Source: Oculina patagonica (Eukaryota). Taken from it: a stretch of DNA of 64,000 bases. Below, piece by piece: positions 25,690 through 34,300 of the stretch. Position numbers and translations under genes: made by a program. Position 1 is the stretch's first letter. Each line of letters opens with the position of its first letter. The stretch covers positions 18,414,001 to 18,478,000 of the forward strand of contig NC_135764.1 in assembly GCF_052425735.1 (NCBI RefSeq). The letters run 5' to 3'. The notes under the pieces are model-generated. The model saw nothing but the letters and a program-made list of their open reading frames with translations. It searched no databases and was not told where the DNA came from.

Positions 25690-27025
25690 AGAACCCTATT
25701 CCCGCACAGAGAAATCCACAAGATGACATGGACATCCCCAAACGGCAAGGTGAAGGCACGAAGAGGAGCAGATGTTGGGAGTGACCAGCTGCTGATGGCA
25801 ACGCTGGCTATCAAGCTGCGCAAAACCAAGAAGGGAGTGCTCAGCGACTTGATTTTGCAGACGACATCTGCCTCTTAGCCCATCGCTCAGATGCGCCGAT
25901 CACCCTGCATGGAAAGATAGTTGAAGAAGTCAACGAGTTTACGTACCTTGGCTCCAAGATGACCACCGATGGAGACTCAGAGTCAGAGATTAGAGCAAGG
26001 CTCTCCAAGGCAGGGCAAGCATTTGCCTCCCTCAAGAACATCTGGAAAAGCAAGAAGATCACCCTAAAGACTAAACTCCGCTTCTTCAAGAGTAACGTTC
26101 TCACCACGTTGCTGTATGGGTGTGAGTCATGGAAGGCCACAAAAGCCATTTGCCACAAACTTGACACATTCCAAAATCGATGTCTACGCCGCATTCTGAA
26201 CATCTTATAATAATAATAATAAAACTTTATTTAAACTCGAATTTAGAGTAGCTTAACAAGCTAATATTTCCGAGAACGAAATAGATAACAACAAATTAAA
26301 ATAAAAATTACTATTTACATATTTAAAATTGACTTATATTAACTAATTGAATGGGCTTTGCAGATGTGCCTTTTACAGTCAGATAAGTTACATAGCCTTA
26401 TAAAGTTAGGTAGAGAATTTCATTCTTTTGTTGCCAGATAAGTAAAGGAGTGGAGACCAAAAGTTGTAGTTCTAGGTTTGGGCATTTCCAGTATATAGTT
26501 TCCACGCAGGTTGTATGAAGTAGAACGGAACGAGAACATGTTTCTCATATAGGCTGGATAGTCATTGAAAAATAGACTTTTGTACAAGAGGAATTTACAG
26601 ATGCGTTGATCATGAAGTTGGAGACAGTTTATCTTGTCTAGCAGCACATTATAAGGCGATTCAAAATTACTTAAAAAATCAATCTTCTGGCCTAACATCA
26701 TTTCAAACGCCGAGCTACCCCGGGCAACCTCAACAAACAACATCAGCTCCGAGGTGAAGAAGAGAAGGTGGCGCTGGATCGGACACGTCCTCAGGATGGA
26801 TCCATCATCAATTCCCAGAGTTGCTCTGCACTGGACTCCATCTGGAAAAAGAGCAAGGGGACGACCAAAAGAGACCTGGCGGCGGACAGTTGAAAAAGAG
26901 ATGCGGGAAAGCGGACTCAGCTGGGGAGAGCTGAGAAAGAATGCAAAGAACAGGCAGCAGTGGCGGAATCTGGTAACGGCCTTATGTGCCCAAGGGCACG
27001 AAGAGGACTGAGTGAGCTGAGCTAA
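25690..27025 (+). mobile_element. RTE-clade non-LTR retrotransposon remnant, internally deleted and interrupted
   Basis: Endonuclease pieces TLFPHREIHKMTWTSPNG and RRGADVGSD; RT motif FADDICLL; FTYLGS..IRARLSKAGQAF..LLYGCESW..FQNRCLRRIL; RRWRWIGHVLRM..GKRARGRPKETWRR; stop at 27011 followed by a short tgag-repeat tail. Confidence 0.9.
26207..26681 (-). mobile_element. 5'-truncated LINE 3' end (CR1/L2-like) inserted into the RTE remnant
   Basis: Minus-strand peptide LLYKSLFFNDYPAYM..SYNLRGNYILEMPKPRTTTFGLHSFTY, then AATAAA and a (TTA)n tail. ATCTT is duplicated at 26202-26206 and 26682-26686, and the RTE frame resumes (NIFWPNIISN). Confidence 0.8.
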
Positions 27026-27598
27026 GCACCCGATTTTAGACCTTTTTTTAATTAAATTGAGTGTAATCAGTAAATGGGAAATACTTTTCTCCCTCATTGC
27101 TTCTCCTGTCGTGTTTTTTTTCTTTTTCTTCCCTTAATTTTTACTTTCTTTACATATTCCTAAGAAGTGGGGGCAATGGCGGCGTCCCTGTCTTCTCTTT
27201 CCAAGCCCTACATCGGGAGGGGTAGGGACAGTTTAAGAATAAAGTTGTCTCAACATAATGCCTTGGATGCACAGAGAGTGAGGATTAATTTTTATTAAGG
27301 TTAATATGATACACTGGCAAAAGAAAAAGAGTATTTCCCGCAGGACTCCGAACGAATCAAATTCACCATACGTGCATCGGTTTTTACGTCTTTATTGTTA
27401 TCAATCACAGGACAAGTAATACACAAACCTGGTAAAACATTACATCACAAATAACGGACTATTTAGCGGTTACCTCCGTGAGACCAGTCTTAATGCACTT
27501 CTGGATTCACATGTTTGGACATATAGTAAAGGTAACTGCTTACATTTGTTAGAGCCGTTTCCGTTAACCTCTGAGCTAATTTTGTTCGATTATGGTAT

Positions 27599-30500
27599 TT
27601 ATTTTGTTGTCATGCTGTCACCAGCACGCTGAGATCTTCCAACTTTACCTCTCGCTTTATGTAATCGAGACGTTATAATCTTTTTGTAAACCCTGGAACG
27701 CTTTAATATTCTCCTTAACGGAGACAGACTTATCTTGAAACGTTGAATACGAAAGCCTACTGGAATAGTATTGCGCCTTAACGGAAAACGTCGAAACGAT
27801 TGAGAGAGACTGACTGGAAAGTGTAAGCGTACTCGCTTCCTTAATATTGACTTGTGCCGGGTTTTGAGTAAGCGACGAGGATTAATCTGATTTCCAAGCG
27901 AAGAACCCTTGGAAGCAGCTGCTGAAATAGAATCAAAATATGTGTGAGCTTGGTTTCCTGTTTACTGTGATGGTTGGATCGATATTTGATTCACATGCAT
28001 TTTAAAAAGAGCACATTTGAAATTGCCCGTATGCTATTTCAAGCTCTTTACGTGCATAAAAAAATGTAGCTACAAACTTGAATGTTGTCCTAGTGTATTT
28101 TTTTACAATGTATATTGTCCGGGTATTTTGAGCATCGTGGTAATACTATTTTTCTTCCTAGCTCATAATTAATTCAAAGTCGACACTGTGGTGGAAACCC
28201 ATAATATTGTTATCTTAATTGTATAGGAAGTCACTATCACAGTCAATTAACTCTGCATCGTGTATACCGTCAAAATTGCATTGGACATATTTCTCGTACT
28301 AGCTGATAGACTGCTAACACGAAGGCTAAAACATGTTTAAAACATGTGTAACTCAAATAGTGTACAACTGATTTGTGAAACGTTGCTTATACTGTTTTTT
28401 GTTTTTGGATTGCGTATCTATCTTAAAAAAGTAAAAGCATACTTACGTATGGAACTTCTTTCAACAAACATTGTGTCCGGTCCACTGTCGCCACGTAAAT
28501 CCACGCTGTGATCAAAGGAATATGGGTACCAGCCCCTCAGCGGATGAAACCAGTTTCCTTCAAAAAAATGTTCAGAGTAATAACTTGTTAATTTTCATAC
28601 TTTAGATGTGATTGAAAAACCGCTCTCTTGGAAACATTTTATTGAAGAAAGTAGCTGACATCAGTTATAATATATTAGCATAACAGTAAATGGGTGTACT
28701 GATTTGTTACCAAAGTAGCACATTTTTAAAACACTTAATGACTGGTTTCCCGAGAAACCAGTCATTAAGTGATTTGTTATATGGCTCAACGAAGACTTAG
28801 AAAAATGGCGGTCGTCGCTCAACTTAACATTCGCGGGCAACAGTGCACTGTCACCCTCTGACGTCACAGATTTTACAATGTTGCCCGCTCAGAGATTTCT
28901 GGCGGGAAACAGTTTTACTGTTAGATGCCATGTAACTTCGAAGTAGCCAATGAGAGCGCGCCCTGTTGGGTAGAAAATTTCAGCTATATTTAACAATTAT
29001 TCACCGACACTGAGGTGAATAATGGTTTTAGTATATACCACACAAGTTGAATAACTACCGGACCAAAACATCACTTTCGGTAAACAAAGCGACGCGCGAA
29101 TGCAGTTTGTTCTCTTTAGTTGTTCGGAGGTGAATAGTACTTTGCTTATCACCTCCGAGTTAACCAATCAGCGCGCGCGAAAAGCACTATTCATCTGTGT
29201 GGTATATACTAAAACAAATTACTGTGTTGTCCTCAGATTACAGTTAGTGAAAGAACTCTCAAAAGAAAGAACAGTACAGGAACTCTCTCAAGGAAAGTCA
29301 TGGCATATTATTATAGACATGGTTCGTACAATCTTGAAAAGGTCTTGAATTTTAGCAGTCGTCTTGAAAAGTCCTTGAATTTGGTTAAGTCCATGAAAAG
29401 TACTTGATTTTTTCAGTAGGTCTTGAAAAGTCCTTGAAATTTAGGATTTCTTGCACGCCCTTTTACTTTTCTGATAAATTAAATGATTTTGGTAAGAAAA
29501 ATTTGTTCATGAACGACTTCTAAAATGCGAAATAACTTGCGAAAATGTGGGTGTAAAACGCGAACCCCTACATGAAGCATGATTTAGATCTTTGCTTTTA
29601 TTTCATGCACCAAGGCTTGCACCAGGCCTCTGATGTGGGGTTGTCCACCATGTAGTTTTGTTGGAAGGGGCAACATGGCCGATAGTGAGTAAACATGTAG
29701 CGTTGTTTTGAATTCCTTCGTTTGCAATTCAAGTTAGCTATGGGCAAATGTGTATTCAATCGTAAATGGTTTAAAAGTGATGAAAAGTTCAGCTGGGTTA
29801 AAGAATTTAAAGGCGACAAGCACAAGGCTTTGTGTTGTGTTTGCAACAAAGTGATCGACATCGAACGCATGGGAGAAAGCACTTTGAAGTCTTACATGAA
29901 AGGCAAGAAATATAAAAGGAACACTGTTGTCGTTTTAAAAAAAGTTAAATGCCATCACGATGATCTCCTCAACCAAGCCTGAACTATTTAAAAGTTGTAG
30001 ATGACTTAGGGCCGAATCGCACTATCGGACAAGTTTTAAATGTCATAACATTTTTGACAAAAACAAAATTGTCGCGACAAGTCAGAGACATTTTGAAGAA
30101 AACAAAAGGTGTAATTATTAGTACAATAGCTCTGCACGTGCTTCTGGCATCCCTGTACATTTCTCAGCACGGCCGTCTTTGGCAAACATCAAATATGCAG
30201 TACAACGCGGTAAAATAATTCGCATTTAACATGTTTAAAGTACGCGTGTTCTCATGCAGTAGAATAATGAGTCGTCTCAAGATAACTTTTTCTTTTCTTA
30301 TTCTTACATTTGGCCAAAACACTTCACTTATAAATATGCTTTGCCTCTCGCGAAAAGATTTTGCGGCTGGATTATGATAGTGAGAGCCACATCACGGTGC
30401 ATACTACACCCAACAATTTTTGAGTGCGTGTTGTTTTTCGGTGCAATTTGGACCAAACACAATAGCCAATCAACAACATATTGTTATCTGGCATTACGGG

Positions 30501-32199
30501 GTATGGGAATGTGACTTGTCATGAATTGTCCTACCTTGAGGCAGGACAACGGCCCCTTTGATGATTTGTCCGTTTTGACAAAATTTACCCTTGTCCAACA
30601 AGTCGTTCGTTCTTGTTTTTGCAATTGTTTGACAAAATGTATCGCGCGTGCAACGCGGACCAATCATAAGACAACTGCTTCTTTGTTTTCCTGAAATGTT
30701 GGACAAGTTCTAGGTCTCAAAAAACGCATTCGCACTTGTTTTCTGTAACAAGTGACACGTTAATGATGAAATCTACCAATTGTTACAAAATTTGTCTGCT
30801 AGTGCGATTTGGCCCTTAGTTGAGTGTTTAAGAAATGAAAAAGAGGGCGGAGAAATCAGAGACTTTTGACTCAGTCCTTGAAAACAAGTTTTTGTCCTTG
30901 AAAAGTCCTTGAATTTTGTTTGTCTGAAGTTGTACGAACCATGTATAGATTCTTACGTGCACTGACATTACATATAGGTACGTGGGAGCTGAAAATAGTA
31001 TTATAGAAAAGTTGTTTTCAACCAGCTCCTTTCTCGACTAATATACCAGTAGTAACTTACTATTAACATGACCGTATCCATGATATCCGTGCCCATAACC
31101 ATGACGAAATCCATAACCAGCTGGAACATGTCCAAAATGCAGTCCATACCTAAAACGGCCAGGATAACCATAACCAAAGCCGTGTCTTAGCGAGCTGTAC
31201 CATGGACCACGTGCAAAGCCATGTGCAAAGGGATAGCTTCCACCGTATCCTAAACCGTGTCTCCACTGACCGTGTCTGTAGAACATATGGTGACCAAATG
31301 GGCCAAGCGGTCCATAATGTTGTGGTAAATGAACTGGGTAGACACCGTGTGGATGATATCCATGATAAACCGGGATGTTGAGCGGATGACGATGCATTAA
31401 GTGATGGATGTACTCGCCAGCTGCAGTTGGCACACCATTAGGCATCAAGGTCATGTGGCTCGCCGAGGGAAGCAACGAACTGATGCTCGGTGGAGCTGCT
31501 AGTGTAAAGATGTCGTGTTTTTTGTGTCTAGAAATCAGATTAGGTTTGATCGGCTTGTGAATAATTCTGTGTCTCTTGGTCTGATGACCACGCTTTTCTG
31601 TAAACAAACAAAAAAAAACAAACAAAGGAAAACGTATCAAGGAGTTCACAATGTCGATGCTCCTAAATTTAAACCTTTAAGTAGTTACGTATGATTAATC
31701 GATCGGTTGTTCGCTTGAAAATATACATGTCATTTGCAAAACAAAATAAGTTGCCTGCACGAATAAACAGCGACCAGACAACGTTTTCGCTTACTCGAAA
31801 AAAAGTCGCTTATTAAAACTCAACTTTATCTCAAACTTTCCTAGAGAATTGATCCGCATGATGTATAATTATACATAGAGTTCTGGCGTATAGGCATTTT
31901 CAGCATTTTAATTTTTCAATTAACAAATTACACAAAAGGACAACAGTTTAAATTGCTCGTACAATTCGGTAAAAGTTCGGGCTATTCCATAGGTTATTTT
32001 TTTTTTAAATGTAAAAGCATGACGAACAATAAGCATTGAAGAAACGAGATTCATCGAAAAATCTGTAAAAGACCAATATAAAAGCAATAGTAAAGCGATG
32101 AAATCTTGGGAAAGAAGACTTACCTATTGTTCGCTTTGGTTGAACCATTGTTGAAGTAAGAACAAGCAAGGTGAAGTATATTAAAACTTTCTCCTTCAT
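27599..32199 (-). CDS. Gene B: secreted His/Gly/Tyr/Pro-rich protein with an Arg/Lys-rich C-terminus, 348 aa
   Basis: Exons: 32199-32124 (MKEKVLIYFTLLVLTSTMVQPKRTI), 31597-31061 (HGY-rich), 28557-28447 (NWFHPLRGWYPYSFDH...), 27921-27599 (PRRLLKTRHKSILRKRVRLH...MTTK*). All GT-AG and phase 1; 1047 nt with no internal stop. Confidence 0.8.
29318..30943 (+). mobile_element. Deleted hAT-like DNA transposon with a 6-bp TSD, in intron 2 of gene B
   Basis: TIR catggttcgtacaa/ttgtacgaaccatg; TATAGA on both flanks (29312-29317, 30944-30949); subterminal cttgaaaagtccttgaa repeats; residual BED-finger-like transposase N-terminus MGKCVFNRKW..FSW..KALCCVCNKVIDI..MGESTLKSYM. Confidence 0.75.
30009..30815. 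mobile_element. PIF/Harbinger-like MITE nested in the hAT-like element
   Basis: TIR gggccgaatcgcacta/tagtgcgatttggccc; TTA duplicated at 30006-30008 and 30816-30818. Confidence 0.75.
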
Positions 32200-32859
32200 G
32201 TTTCTTGTTCACGCTCGTTTCCTAGAATGAAACTGGTCTCAGTATATCGTTACATCAACGAGATGTAAAGAAAATGAGACCTTACAAGGTGTTATTACTT
32301 ACGGAATTTCAGTGAGTCCAACAGTTATTTTTTCGGAGCGTGTGATTGTTTTTCTTTGAAATTCAAAACAGTTATGGTTGCTACCAAATTTTACAGGTGA
32401 CAGATAAAACTAAACATTCCGTAGCTTGAACGTCAGAGACTGTTGTTGATCATTTTCTCAATTAATAGGGACTCATGTTATGATTATACCCAGTCTGCCG
32501 GCCTTGACAGAAACACTTAAGATACGTACTTTCGGCTAATTTTCTCAGTTGCAGTACTTTTAAGTTTATTACGAGTTTAAAGATAAGACAAAAAAGTAGT
32601 GGAGGAACACTACTCATTTGTTTTCGTTCATCATCTAAACTAGATCTAAACCTATTTTTCTGCACGTTGGGTCGACAGAAATCGAGTTAAAGCAAGAATG
32701 TCTTTGCTCTTAAACTTAACAAGCTATATTTTAGTGATTTAGAACAGTAAACGTAGTGGATAAAAGGCTAAACTAATGAAAACATTATGATTTTACGGTC
32801 CTTAAATTTGGAATCAACAAATCAGAAGAACTTTCTCTTTCTTTCCTAAACGCTTCAAC

Positions 32860-34300
32860 TCAGGGGGGAACGCATTCCCCGTCAAACGTACTTTTCTGTC
32901 TGTCTTTTCTCTGTGTCTCGTTCTTATCTGACTGGCTCCAGGACAAGCCCAGCCACTGGATTTCTGCTACTGTGGGTCTTCTCCACGCGGTGTGTCGTCT
33001 TTCCTGGTTCTTTTTGTCTTGCCCACTCCAGCGGAGGGTCTGGTGGACAATGCTGGATGGTTCTTTTCTCAGCATATGGCCATCCAGGCACATTTACTGG
33101 AATATACGTTTTCGGATTTGCAAGTGCATTCGATCTTGCCCCGTTTTCTTACACAAGTCTTTATTGGAGATATTCTCTGGCCACTGGATGCGTAGGAGGC
33201 TGCTTACTGTGAGGGGGTGGGGGGACAACCTCCCCCGCCCCGACCCAAGCCCTTGCCCTTTCATACACTATTTTTGACAAAAAGGTAACCCTTTCGTATA
33301 CCTTCGATGGAAAATGACACGCCTTTCATATAACTACATAAGGAATACTGCTTCTCTTTTCTTACGTTTTCACTTGGAAGACATCACTTAGCAAAGGTCC
33401 GCAATTTTGTGATTTGTGCGTTTTAATGTCTTTCAGGTCTTTTCCTGTCATACAACCTTATCCACTTCTATTTTCGCTCGTTCAAGGATTATACTTCTTT
33501 TTAGCAGTTTATGTTGATATGTAAGGACATTTCGGCAGGAGTAATGTGTAAAGTATAAATTGGTGACGTTGGTGGAGGTCAATTCAGGGGATTCTGAAAG
33601 TATTCTTTCCATCGGGCTAGTTTTTTTATCTTTTTCTTATCAATTTCGTGAGAACTTTACCATCCTTGTCTTTGACAGGCTGATCCGTTGTGCGGTGTGA
33701 TACTGTAAGCTTTCGAGCGATAAATTAGAGCTAATCTAAGAGAAACAAGTTTTTCTCTTAGATTAAATACTTAGCATAAAATAAACTAGAGCTACGTCAA
33801 ATTCTGCTGACGTGCAGCTTCCTTTGCCTCTCGTGTTTTGCCCTCAATATAGTCTCAATTCGCTGTGTTAAGCCCGTGTTGAGCCGTTTTCTTGCTCGAT
33901 CTGGTCTTACTATCGGTCACAGCCGCTTTTCCTTTCCTTCGCTCCTCTTCTTTCGGTACTACATGGTTTGCTATCCGCTCCTTATTTTGTCGAGTATTCT
34001 TCCTCAAATCCTCCTCAGAGGTCTCATTCTTTACGGACTTTGCTTGTTCCCAATACTTCTCTTAAGGTGGGAGTGGAATTCAGTGAGATGTTCTGTCGAC
34101 ATAACTATACCACTACTTAGGAGGGTTGAATGCCGTATTTAACACTTTCTCTTCGACGTAAAAGACGGGTGGAAAAACTCTCTATTGTTTCCTACTAAAT
34201 ATGCAATGTTTTTGTTGACCCACTGGAACGCGTGGTGATTGATCTTAAATGCTTCCATAATTTATCGCCCAGATAGGGATGATTGTTCCACCTTTTGGAA
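32860..34300 (-). mobile_element. Old, degraded RTE-clade LINE remnant
   Basis: Minus-strand fragments LLRIQWPENISNKDL, GHMLRKEPSSIVHQTLRW..AWRR and LARWKEYF, with many frameshifts. The upstream boundary is approximate. Confidence 0.6.

Follow-up and report, generated by a model that had tools for sequence, protein, structure and literature searches.

Within a stretch of 64,000 nt from the stony coral Oculina patagonica (assembly GCF_052425735.1, contig NC_135764.1, positions 18,414,001 to 18,478,000; hereafter the window, whose own numbering is used throughout), the minus strand carries the locus LOC144659739, a genuine, transcribed, single-copy gene of four exons that have GT..AG borders and phase 1 junctions throughout. 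Conceptual splicing of the exons, of 76, 537, 111 and 320 nt, yields one open coding sequence (CDS) of 1044 nt for a protein of 347 amino acids (aa). It runs from an ATG at 32199 to a TAA whose last base is 27599, which is exactly the span that an earlier note on this DNA had assigned to a "His-Gly-Tyr repeat" protein with a polycationic tail. The donor of exon 1 reads ATAG/GTAAGT. The parts of the gene, with residue numbers of the encoded protein, are the following.

32124–32300, minus strand: exon 1 as covered by the X4 contig described below, with the 5′ untranslated region (UTR) reaching to at least 32300 and the CDS at 32199–32124 (25 codons and one base)
32199–32143, minus strand: signal peptide, about residues 1–19, encoded by exon 1
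31598–32123, minus strand: intron 1, 526 nt, phase 1 (474 nt in the Orbicella counterpart)
31061–31597, minus strand: exon 2, 537 nt, 179 aa, with a basic N-terminal part followed by a His/Gly/aromatic low-complexity region
31062–31373, minus strand: the His/Gly/aromatic "sticker" region of exon 2, residues 101–204
28558–31060, minus strand: intron 2, 2503 nt, phase 1, its joint 28556/31060 present in three runs
28447–28557, minus strand: exon 3, 111 nt, 37 aa, a symmetric phase 1-1 cassette encoding an aromatic and acidic linker
28487–28495, minus strand: an RGD in exon 3 (R226-G227-D228, context VDLRGDSGP)
27919–28446, minus strand: intron 3, 528 nt, phase 1, with a tandem CAG/CAG acceptor, its joint 27918/28447 present in three runs
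27599–27918, minus strand: coding part of exon 4, 106 aa (polycationic tail, residues 242–347) and the TAA stop at 27601–27599
27725–27760, minus strand: the family-wide tail motif VGFRIQRFKISL, residues 295–306
27370–27598, minus strand: 3′UTR, with AATAAA at 27396–27391 and transcript ends at about 27370–27378

Transcript data on positions 27400–32300 consisted of contigs from three runs belonging to three studies (X1, X2 and X4) and of one raw poly(A) library; that the run type is RNA was a guess, and the mRNA status of the contigs is argued from the single genomic locus. One contig per run, 1.28 to 1.39 kb long, spans both joints 31060/28556 and 28447/27918, and the skipped segments have CT..AC ends on the plus strand, equivalent to GT..AG on the minus strand. 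Splicing thus joins exons 3 and 4 to exon 2, as had been supposed from the sequence, and does so in contigs of all three studies. No paralog of any exon was detected in the 529-Mb Oculina assembly. Because this assembly has one locus per exon, the form without introns must be mRNA rather than a retrocopy. The X4 contig alone extends from exon 2 into exon 1, and all three contigs stop 13–21 nt beyond the AATAAA signal. Raw reads of the poly(A) library on the exons were few and of minus strand, and fell in the bins 27400–27727, which hold the start of the 3′UTR and the end of the tail CDS. Within intron 1, the segment 31633–31956 is covered by one low-depth contig of run X2, which is consistent with unspliced pre-mRNA or with traces of genomic DNA in the library.

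The gene is already annotated, without an assigned function, and all its orthologs are likewise uncharacterized. Its RefSeq entry, XP_078376366.1 ("uncharacterized protein LOC144659739", Oculina patagonica, 348 aa), is identical to the model given here save for one extra Ala at the junction of exons 3 and 4. At the tandem acceptor (27918–27921) the contigs of the three runs use position 27918, giving ...IPASKG..., whereas RefSeq has ...IPAASKG...; the extra residue is consistent with use of an acceptor 3 nt upstream. Both forms, with and without the additional Ala, occur among other corals.

The encoded protein has an isoelectric point (pI) of 11.4, no Cys, 32 His and about 57 Arg and Lys residues. 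Exon 2 contributes 27 His, 28 Gly, 18 Pro, 16 Tyr and only 3 acidic residues among its 179 aa (15% His, about 31% Gly plus His), in agreement with the count of about 27 His and the near absence of acidic residues reported earlier. The description of exon 3 as an aromatic and acidic linker is borne out by 7 aromatic and 5 acidic residues in 37 aa. So is that of a 106-aa Arg/Lys-rich exon outside the open reading frame (ORF) track: exon 4 encodes 20 Arg, 11 Lys and a single acidic residue, for a net charge of +30, and is missing from the ORF list because it has no Met start. In the 110 aa that follow RHPLNI (about residues 101–210), 18 His, 25 Gly, 27 aromatic residues, 11 Pro and 8 Arg were counted, and no acidic residue.

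Recurring HGY and RHG motifs had also been pointed out in exon 2. Motif counts were compared with 2000 composition-preserving shuffles, and HG[YFL] was found 7 times (0.8 expected), RHG 4 times (0.3 expected) and G[YF]G 6 times (0.6 expected). For each of the three, none of the 2000 shuffles was as high as observed, so that the motifs go beyond what composition alone would give. As for a tandem array at the DNA level under the His/Gly/Tyr stretch, only one 12-nt unit in two copies was present. The stretch is degenerate low complexity.

No known fold or domain accounts for the protein. Pfam gave no match, whether with separate exons or with six family members, and a sequence search of the PDB gave no relative. 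An AlphaFold2 model of the Orbicella ortholog, built on an 11-row alignment, had a mean predicted local distance difference test score (pLDDT) of 35 and a predicted template modelling score (pTM) of 0.15. Its helices are confined to residues 2–18, which correspond to the signal peptide, and to a low-confidence C-terminal helix with a pLDDT of 56–67. The ESM Atlas model of the same ortholog had a pLDDT of 0.31, and the ESM Atlas feature and structure searches returned nothing usable, the best feature score of 0.80 lying within noise. The protein is thus predicted to be intrinsically disordered almost throughout. The N-terminal hydrophobic signal sequence is kept in all orthologs (alignments A1 and A2) and, to judge from this conserved signal peptide, the protein should enter the secretory pathway.

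Word-indexed and exhaustive HMMER searches returned coral proteins only, and all named matches were scleractinian; the exhaustive search used a single-sequence query, and low-complexity proteins diverge fast. With this same limitation of a single-sequence query, no named match came from a sea anemone, an octocoral or a hydrozoan. Orthologs were found in at least six genera, from both major scleractinian clades: Orbicella faveolata LOC110051239; Stylophora pistillata LOC111328409 (XP_022788570); Pocillopora damicornis LOC113666550, P. verrucosa LOC131787102 and P. meandrina; Montipora foliosa and M. capricornis (Montipora XP_068716498 and XP_068754365); Acropora millepora LOC114964128 and A. 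digitifera LOC107338375. At the Orbicella locus these four exons recur (76, 585, 111 and 314 nt), with unchanged phases. Identity per exon to Oculina is 76–94% for Orbicella, about 41–77% for Stylophora and about 33–44% for Montipora and Acropora. The gene belongs to an orphan family that, among named matches, has been found so far only in Scleractinia.

A Logan contig of run SRR23916682 (399–797) contains a divergent relative of the N-terminal part of exon 2 only (LAAPPSISSVLP...HNLFRQHPMFNVP, E = 1.6e-5 to exon 2), in an exon that stops before any His/Gly/Tyr region. It could be a family member from an early-branching coral or from a non-scleractinian.

Selection on the gene was estimated by the Nei-Gojobori method between Oculina and Orbicella. 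The ratio of nonsynonymous to synonymous substitution rates (dN/dS) was 0.27 for the whole CDS, 0.15 for the N-terminal part of exon 2, 0.36 for its His/Gly/Tyr part, which also carries indels of repeat units, and 0.24 for the exon 4 tail. The most conserved exon is exon 3, with a dN/dS of 0.125 and 94% identity to Orbicella. All parts after the signal peptide being well below 1, the gene is constrained as a protein in this frame. Low complexity and the lack of a known domain might have suggested that the locus makes no functional protein, the ORF being due to chance, the transcript non-coding or the annotation an artefact. Against this stand the spliced transcripts of three studies, the uninterrupted ORF of Orbicella, whose exon phases are identical, the low dN/dS of every exon after the signal peptide, and the orthologs in at least six genera of both coral clades. 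This explanation is effectively refuted, and we give it a very slight chance only.

Several features are shared across the family. The proteins have a pI of 10.5–11.7 and almost no Cys. In the basic region after the signal peptide they carry the motif IH.LM.RHP(L/F)N, which in Oculina reads IHHLMHRHPLNIP and stands in exon 2 together with a second conserved motif, HKKHD..LAAPPS.SSLLP. The middle region contains 21–27 aromatic residues and 10–15 Pro per 110 aa, and is free of Cys. The tail (residues 242–347), with its FGFRIQRFKISL motif, has the nearly invariant pattern (F/V)(G/A)(F/L)RIQR(F/Y/L)..(S/R)L, present in 12 of the 12 orthologs examined. The form of this pattern in Oculina, given in the list above, is close to FGFRIQR(F/Y)KI.L, and alignment A1, which includes Stylophora, Montipora and Acropora, shows no variation at its residues P, F, G, R, I, Q, R, L and P. 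Because stony corals keep a nearly invariant motif in it, the tail goes beyond a generic polycation.

The RGD of exon 3, which like the conserved tail motif had escaped the earlier note, lies in a region predicted to be disordered. The tripeptide is shared by Oculina, Orbicella, Stylophora and Pocillopora, but Montipora and Acropora lack it. Exon 3 as a whole is missing from the Acropora isoform X2, which is what a symmetric cassette of phase 1-1 leads one to expect. A second RGD (LWRRGDRLGL) lies within the His/Gly/Tyr region of several robust-coral orthologs, including exon 2 of Orbicella, and its RGDR aligns to a gap in the Oculina protein.

Such a cationic, secreted protein could serve in host defence, either whole or as fragments cut at dibasic sites, acting in mucus or tissue in the manner of histatins or other cationic antimicrobials. 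The signal peptide, the pI of 11.4, the tail charge of +30 and the 15% His of exon 2 agree with this, as does a conserved 19-aa core of the tail, which in most robust-coral orthologs has RR, KR or KK at its borders. However, these flanking dibasic sites are not kept in Montipora or Acropora, which weakens the idea of a processed peptide. An amphipathic helix in the tail was considered and rejected: the maximal helical hydrophobic moment was 0.55, not above that of shuffled controls (mean 0.60, P = 0.67). Many antimicrobial peptide families are fast-evolving and duplicated; in contrast, the gene studied here is single-copy, is under purifying selection (omega 0.27) and has strict one-to-one orthologs. 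The conserved non-cationic motifs of the N-terminal part and of exon 3 would also be left unexplained. Histatins and cationic antimicrobial peptides do share with the coral protein a His-rich, cationic and secreted character, whereas the coral protein is about ten times longer, has a tail no more amphipathic than expected by chance, and gives no evidence of processing. A role in defence appears unlikely to us.

From the gene model, its expression, the secretion signal, the predicted disorder, the constraint and the taxonomic range, all documented above, we infer function, and every functional reading given in this text is of that kind. Tentatively, we favour the possibility that the protein is a secreted, disordered and self-associating scaffold of the extracellular matrix or of adhesion, a reading drawn by analogy that we place well short of probable. 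In acidic secretory vesicles, the 32 His would add about 30 positive charges and so keep the protein soluble. Upon release, at the pH of seawater or of the calcifying fluid, the His/Gly/aromatic region would shed most of its charge: the charge computed for this region is +22 at pH 5.5 and +7 at pH 8.1, for +75 and +46, respectively, in the whole mature protein. Once deprotonated, the region might self-associate through aromatic and cation-pi contacts, possibly aided by metal bridging between His residues. The permanently cationic tail could bind polyanions, for instance sulfated glycans or acidic proteins of the matrix, by means of both its charge and its conserved motif, and in robust corals the RGD may provide an integrin handle.

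A model for such a switch is found in the squid beak proteins HBP-1 and HBP-2, in which deprotonation of His followed by clustering of Tyr drives phase separation at pH 6–7 (PMC6884462). These proteins resemble the coral protein in being secreted, disordered, rich in Gly, His and Tyr, and in having HG-aromatic motifs, so that by analogy a His-deprotonation switch for self-association is plausible in the coral protein as well. The two differ in that HMMER and PDB searches detected no sequence homology between them, and in that the coral protein adds about 57 Arg and Lys, an RGD exon and a polybasic tail, and is strongly cationic at pH 8. Moreover, squid peptides need at least four tandem GHGxY copies for self-coacervation (PMC6884462), whereas the coral protein has only degenerate HG[YFL]. 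Having no strict GHGxY unit, it is not a repeat protein of the HBP type.

Other known proteins share some of these traits. Hydra spinalin and polychaete Nvjp-1 are alike in being Gly/His-rich secreted proteins of hardened invertebrate structures, a resemblance of general character rather than one from direct comparison of the sequences; their Gly plus His content is above the 31% or so of the coral exon 2. No relative outside corals was obtained at E ≤ 0.001 in the exhaustive search. The earlier note had called the likeness to His-rich material and antimicrobial proteins compositional only, and so it is, since the exhaustive HMMER search gave coral proteins alone and neither Pfam nor PDB a relative. 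Adhesive glycoproteins of the vitronectin type are likewise secreted, with an RGD that lies in a flexible region and, in addition, a polybasic segment that could bind glycosaminoglycans. The coral protein differs from them by its lack of folded domains and of homology, and by an RGD restricted to robust corals. Within this landscape, the coral protein counts as a variant, specific to stony corals, of the secreted, disordered His/Gly/aromatic proteins of other phyla, and its combination of an RGD cassette with a motif-bearing polybasic tail is unusual.

Several points weigh against the scaffold reading. First, strict GHGxY units number zero in the window protein and in every ortholog. Second, the net charge, still about +46 at pH 8, disfavours simple self-coacervation without a polyanion partner; at pH 8.1 it favours joint assembly with a polyanion over assembly of the protein by itself. 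Third, His/Gly richness is lineage-specific. Robust corals have 11–18 His and 17–25 Gly per 110 aa of the middle region, whereas in acroporids (7–9 His, 6–7 Gly and 13–18 Arg) much of the His and Gly is replaced by Arg. The label "His-Gly-Tyr repeat" therefore suits the robust corals but not the family, whose general trait is a cationic, aromatic and Pro-rich region. Fourth, integrin binding is not the core function of the family, because the RGD is absent from Montipora and Acropora and exon 3 is dropped in the Acropora X2 isoform. Last, a full-text search with the LOC, XP, SpisGene, pdam and UniProt identifiers from Stylophora, Acropora, Orbicella, Pocillopora and Oculina retrieved no paper that names any ortholog. 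A literature search likewise retrieved no paper describing a His-rich secreted coral protein.

The difference in His/Gly content between coral lineages also bears on a role in the stinging capsule. Spinalin is a Gly/His-rich protein of the nematocyst spines of Hydra, and the coral protein, itself a secreted, Gly/His-rich cnidarian protein, might be its functional analogue in anthozoans, a structural component of the cnidocyst. After the signal peptide, robust corals have short basic stretches ending in KR, which recall the pro-peptides of cnidocyst proteins. These KR sites, however, are not conserved in acroporids, whose orthologs are also without the Gly/His richness, and the exhaustive search revealed no similarity to proteins of Hydra, sea anemones or octocorals, although all of these have cnidocysts. 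We regard a cnidocyst function as quite improbable.

The genomic surroundings of the gene comprise a neighbouring gene and, inside intron 2, several repeated elements.

22637–21639 and 20426–20163, minus strand: large exon and TSP1 exon, respectively, of an acidic protein gene, ortholog of Stylophora LOC111328397
29025–29215: MITE-like (miniature inverted-repeat transposable element) unit in intron 2, 191 bp, with perfect 20-nt terminal inverted repeats and a very high contig depth in RNA runs
29314–30947: element in intron 2, about 1.6 kb, with 30-nt subterminal repeats CTTGAAAAGTCCTTGAAT...
30004–30820: element in intron 2, 817 bp, with 34-nt inverted ends

The acidic gene follows on the same strand, about 5 kb downstream, and encodes a secreted protein rich in Asp, Glu and Asn, with a signal peptide of its own and a C-terminal TSP1 domain. 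A neighbouring exon matches a GenBank protein from Oculina patagonica at 99% identity. The GenBank Oculina model of the acidic gene, ACROYT_G025543, begins within the acidic exon and looks truncated at its N-terminus. The pairing of a basic and an acidic gene also exists in Stylophora, where the original annotation fused both (PFX26888, 650 aa) and RefSeq later split them. A long isoform of the same kind, spliced to the acidic exon, was considered for Oculina and rejected, the acidic exon belonging to a separate gene with its signal peptide and TSP1 domain. Because the Oculina transcripts end at the poly(A) signal right after exon 4, the PFX26888 fusion is an artefact.

This conserved same-strand neighbour, in Oculina and in Stylophora, brings up a role in the biomineralization space. 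The protein would be a basic, disordered counterpart of the acidic skeletal matrix proteins, released by calicoblasts, that gives shape to the organic matrix or anchors it. Amelogenin and, in pearl oysters, the basic Gly/Tyr-rich framework proteins shematrin and KRMP are loose analogues of such a role. The restriction of named matches to the calcifying order Scleractinia would fit, and so would a secreted, disordered protein rich in His, Pro, Gly and aromatic residues. On the other hand, the Stylophora ortholog XP_022788570 is absent from the skeletal protein tables of Peled et al. 2020 (PMC7115838), a weak objection as these rest on tryptic proteomics. It is absent as well from those supplementary files of two skeletal-proteome papers that were covered, and the main texts of the Acropora, Oculina and Desmophyllum skeletal-proteome papers describe no His-rich or basic protein of this kind. 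These negative results weigh little, because the sequence suits trypsin poorly and because a matrix organiser need not be occluded in the mineral. In the part of the Stylophora cell-atlas supplementary files that was examined, the ortholog does not appear either. A function of this sort, taken on its own, is in our view improbable. The probability left beyond the scaffold and the rivals discussed here goes to something else.

Intron 2 is about nine-fold larger than that of Orbicella (2503 versus 286 nt), and the difference consists of nested inverted-repeat transposon debris, namely the elements listed above. The 1.6-kb element contains an ORF of 86 aa with paired Cys (29722–29982). ORF fragments with RWIGHVLRM...GRPK.TW lie on both sides of the gene, at 26420–27100 and at 32860–33277; in our reading, this pattern typifies the C-terminal part of the reverse-transcriptase ORFs of retrotransposons, which are common in coral genomes.

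Stony corals build reefs, and the known matrix proteins of their tissue-skeleton interface are mostly acidic proteins or domain-bearing adhesion proteins. Many other uncharacterized coral-specific genes exist; the gene described here, which is single-copy, restricted to one order, and encodes a predicted secreted and disordered cationic/aromatic protein, is a clean and well-defined candidate for matrix assembly, adhesion or defence. Should the protein be an ordinary component of mucus or matrix, the value of the analysis would be that of a corrected, evidence-backed gene model. A likeness to the material proteins of squid, worm and Hydra that extended to function would have arisen by convergence, and would be relevant to work on bio-inspired materials. 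A more specific version of the scaffold reading, in which we have little confidence, is that the protein physically links the epithelium that forms the skeleton with the acidic organic matrix: a pH-switched His/aromatic condensate would form, the tail would complex acidic proteins or sulfated glycans and, in robust corals, the RGD would engage integrins of calicoblasts or desmocytes. If this were true, such coupling would be an innovation of stony corals, and the protein would be a missing basic partner in biomineralization and in the adhesion of tissue to skeleton.

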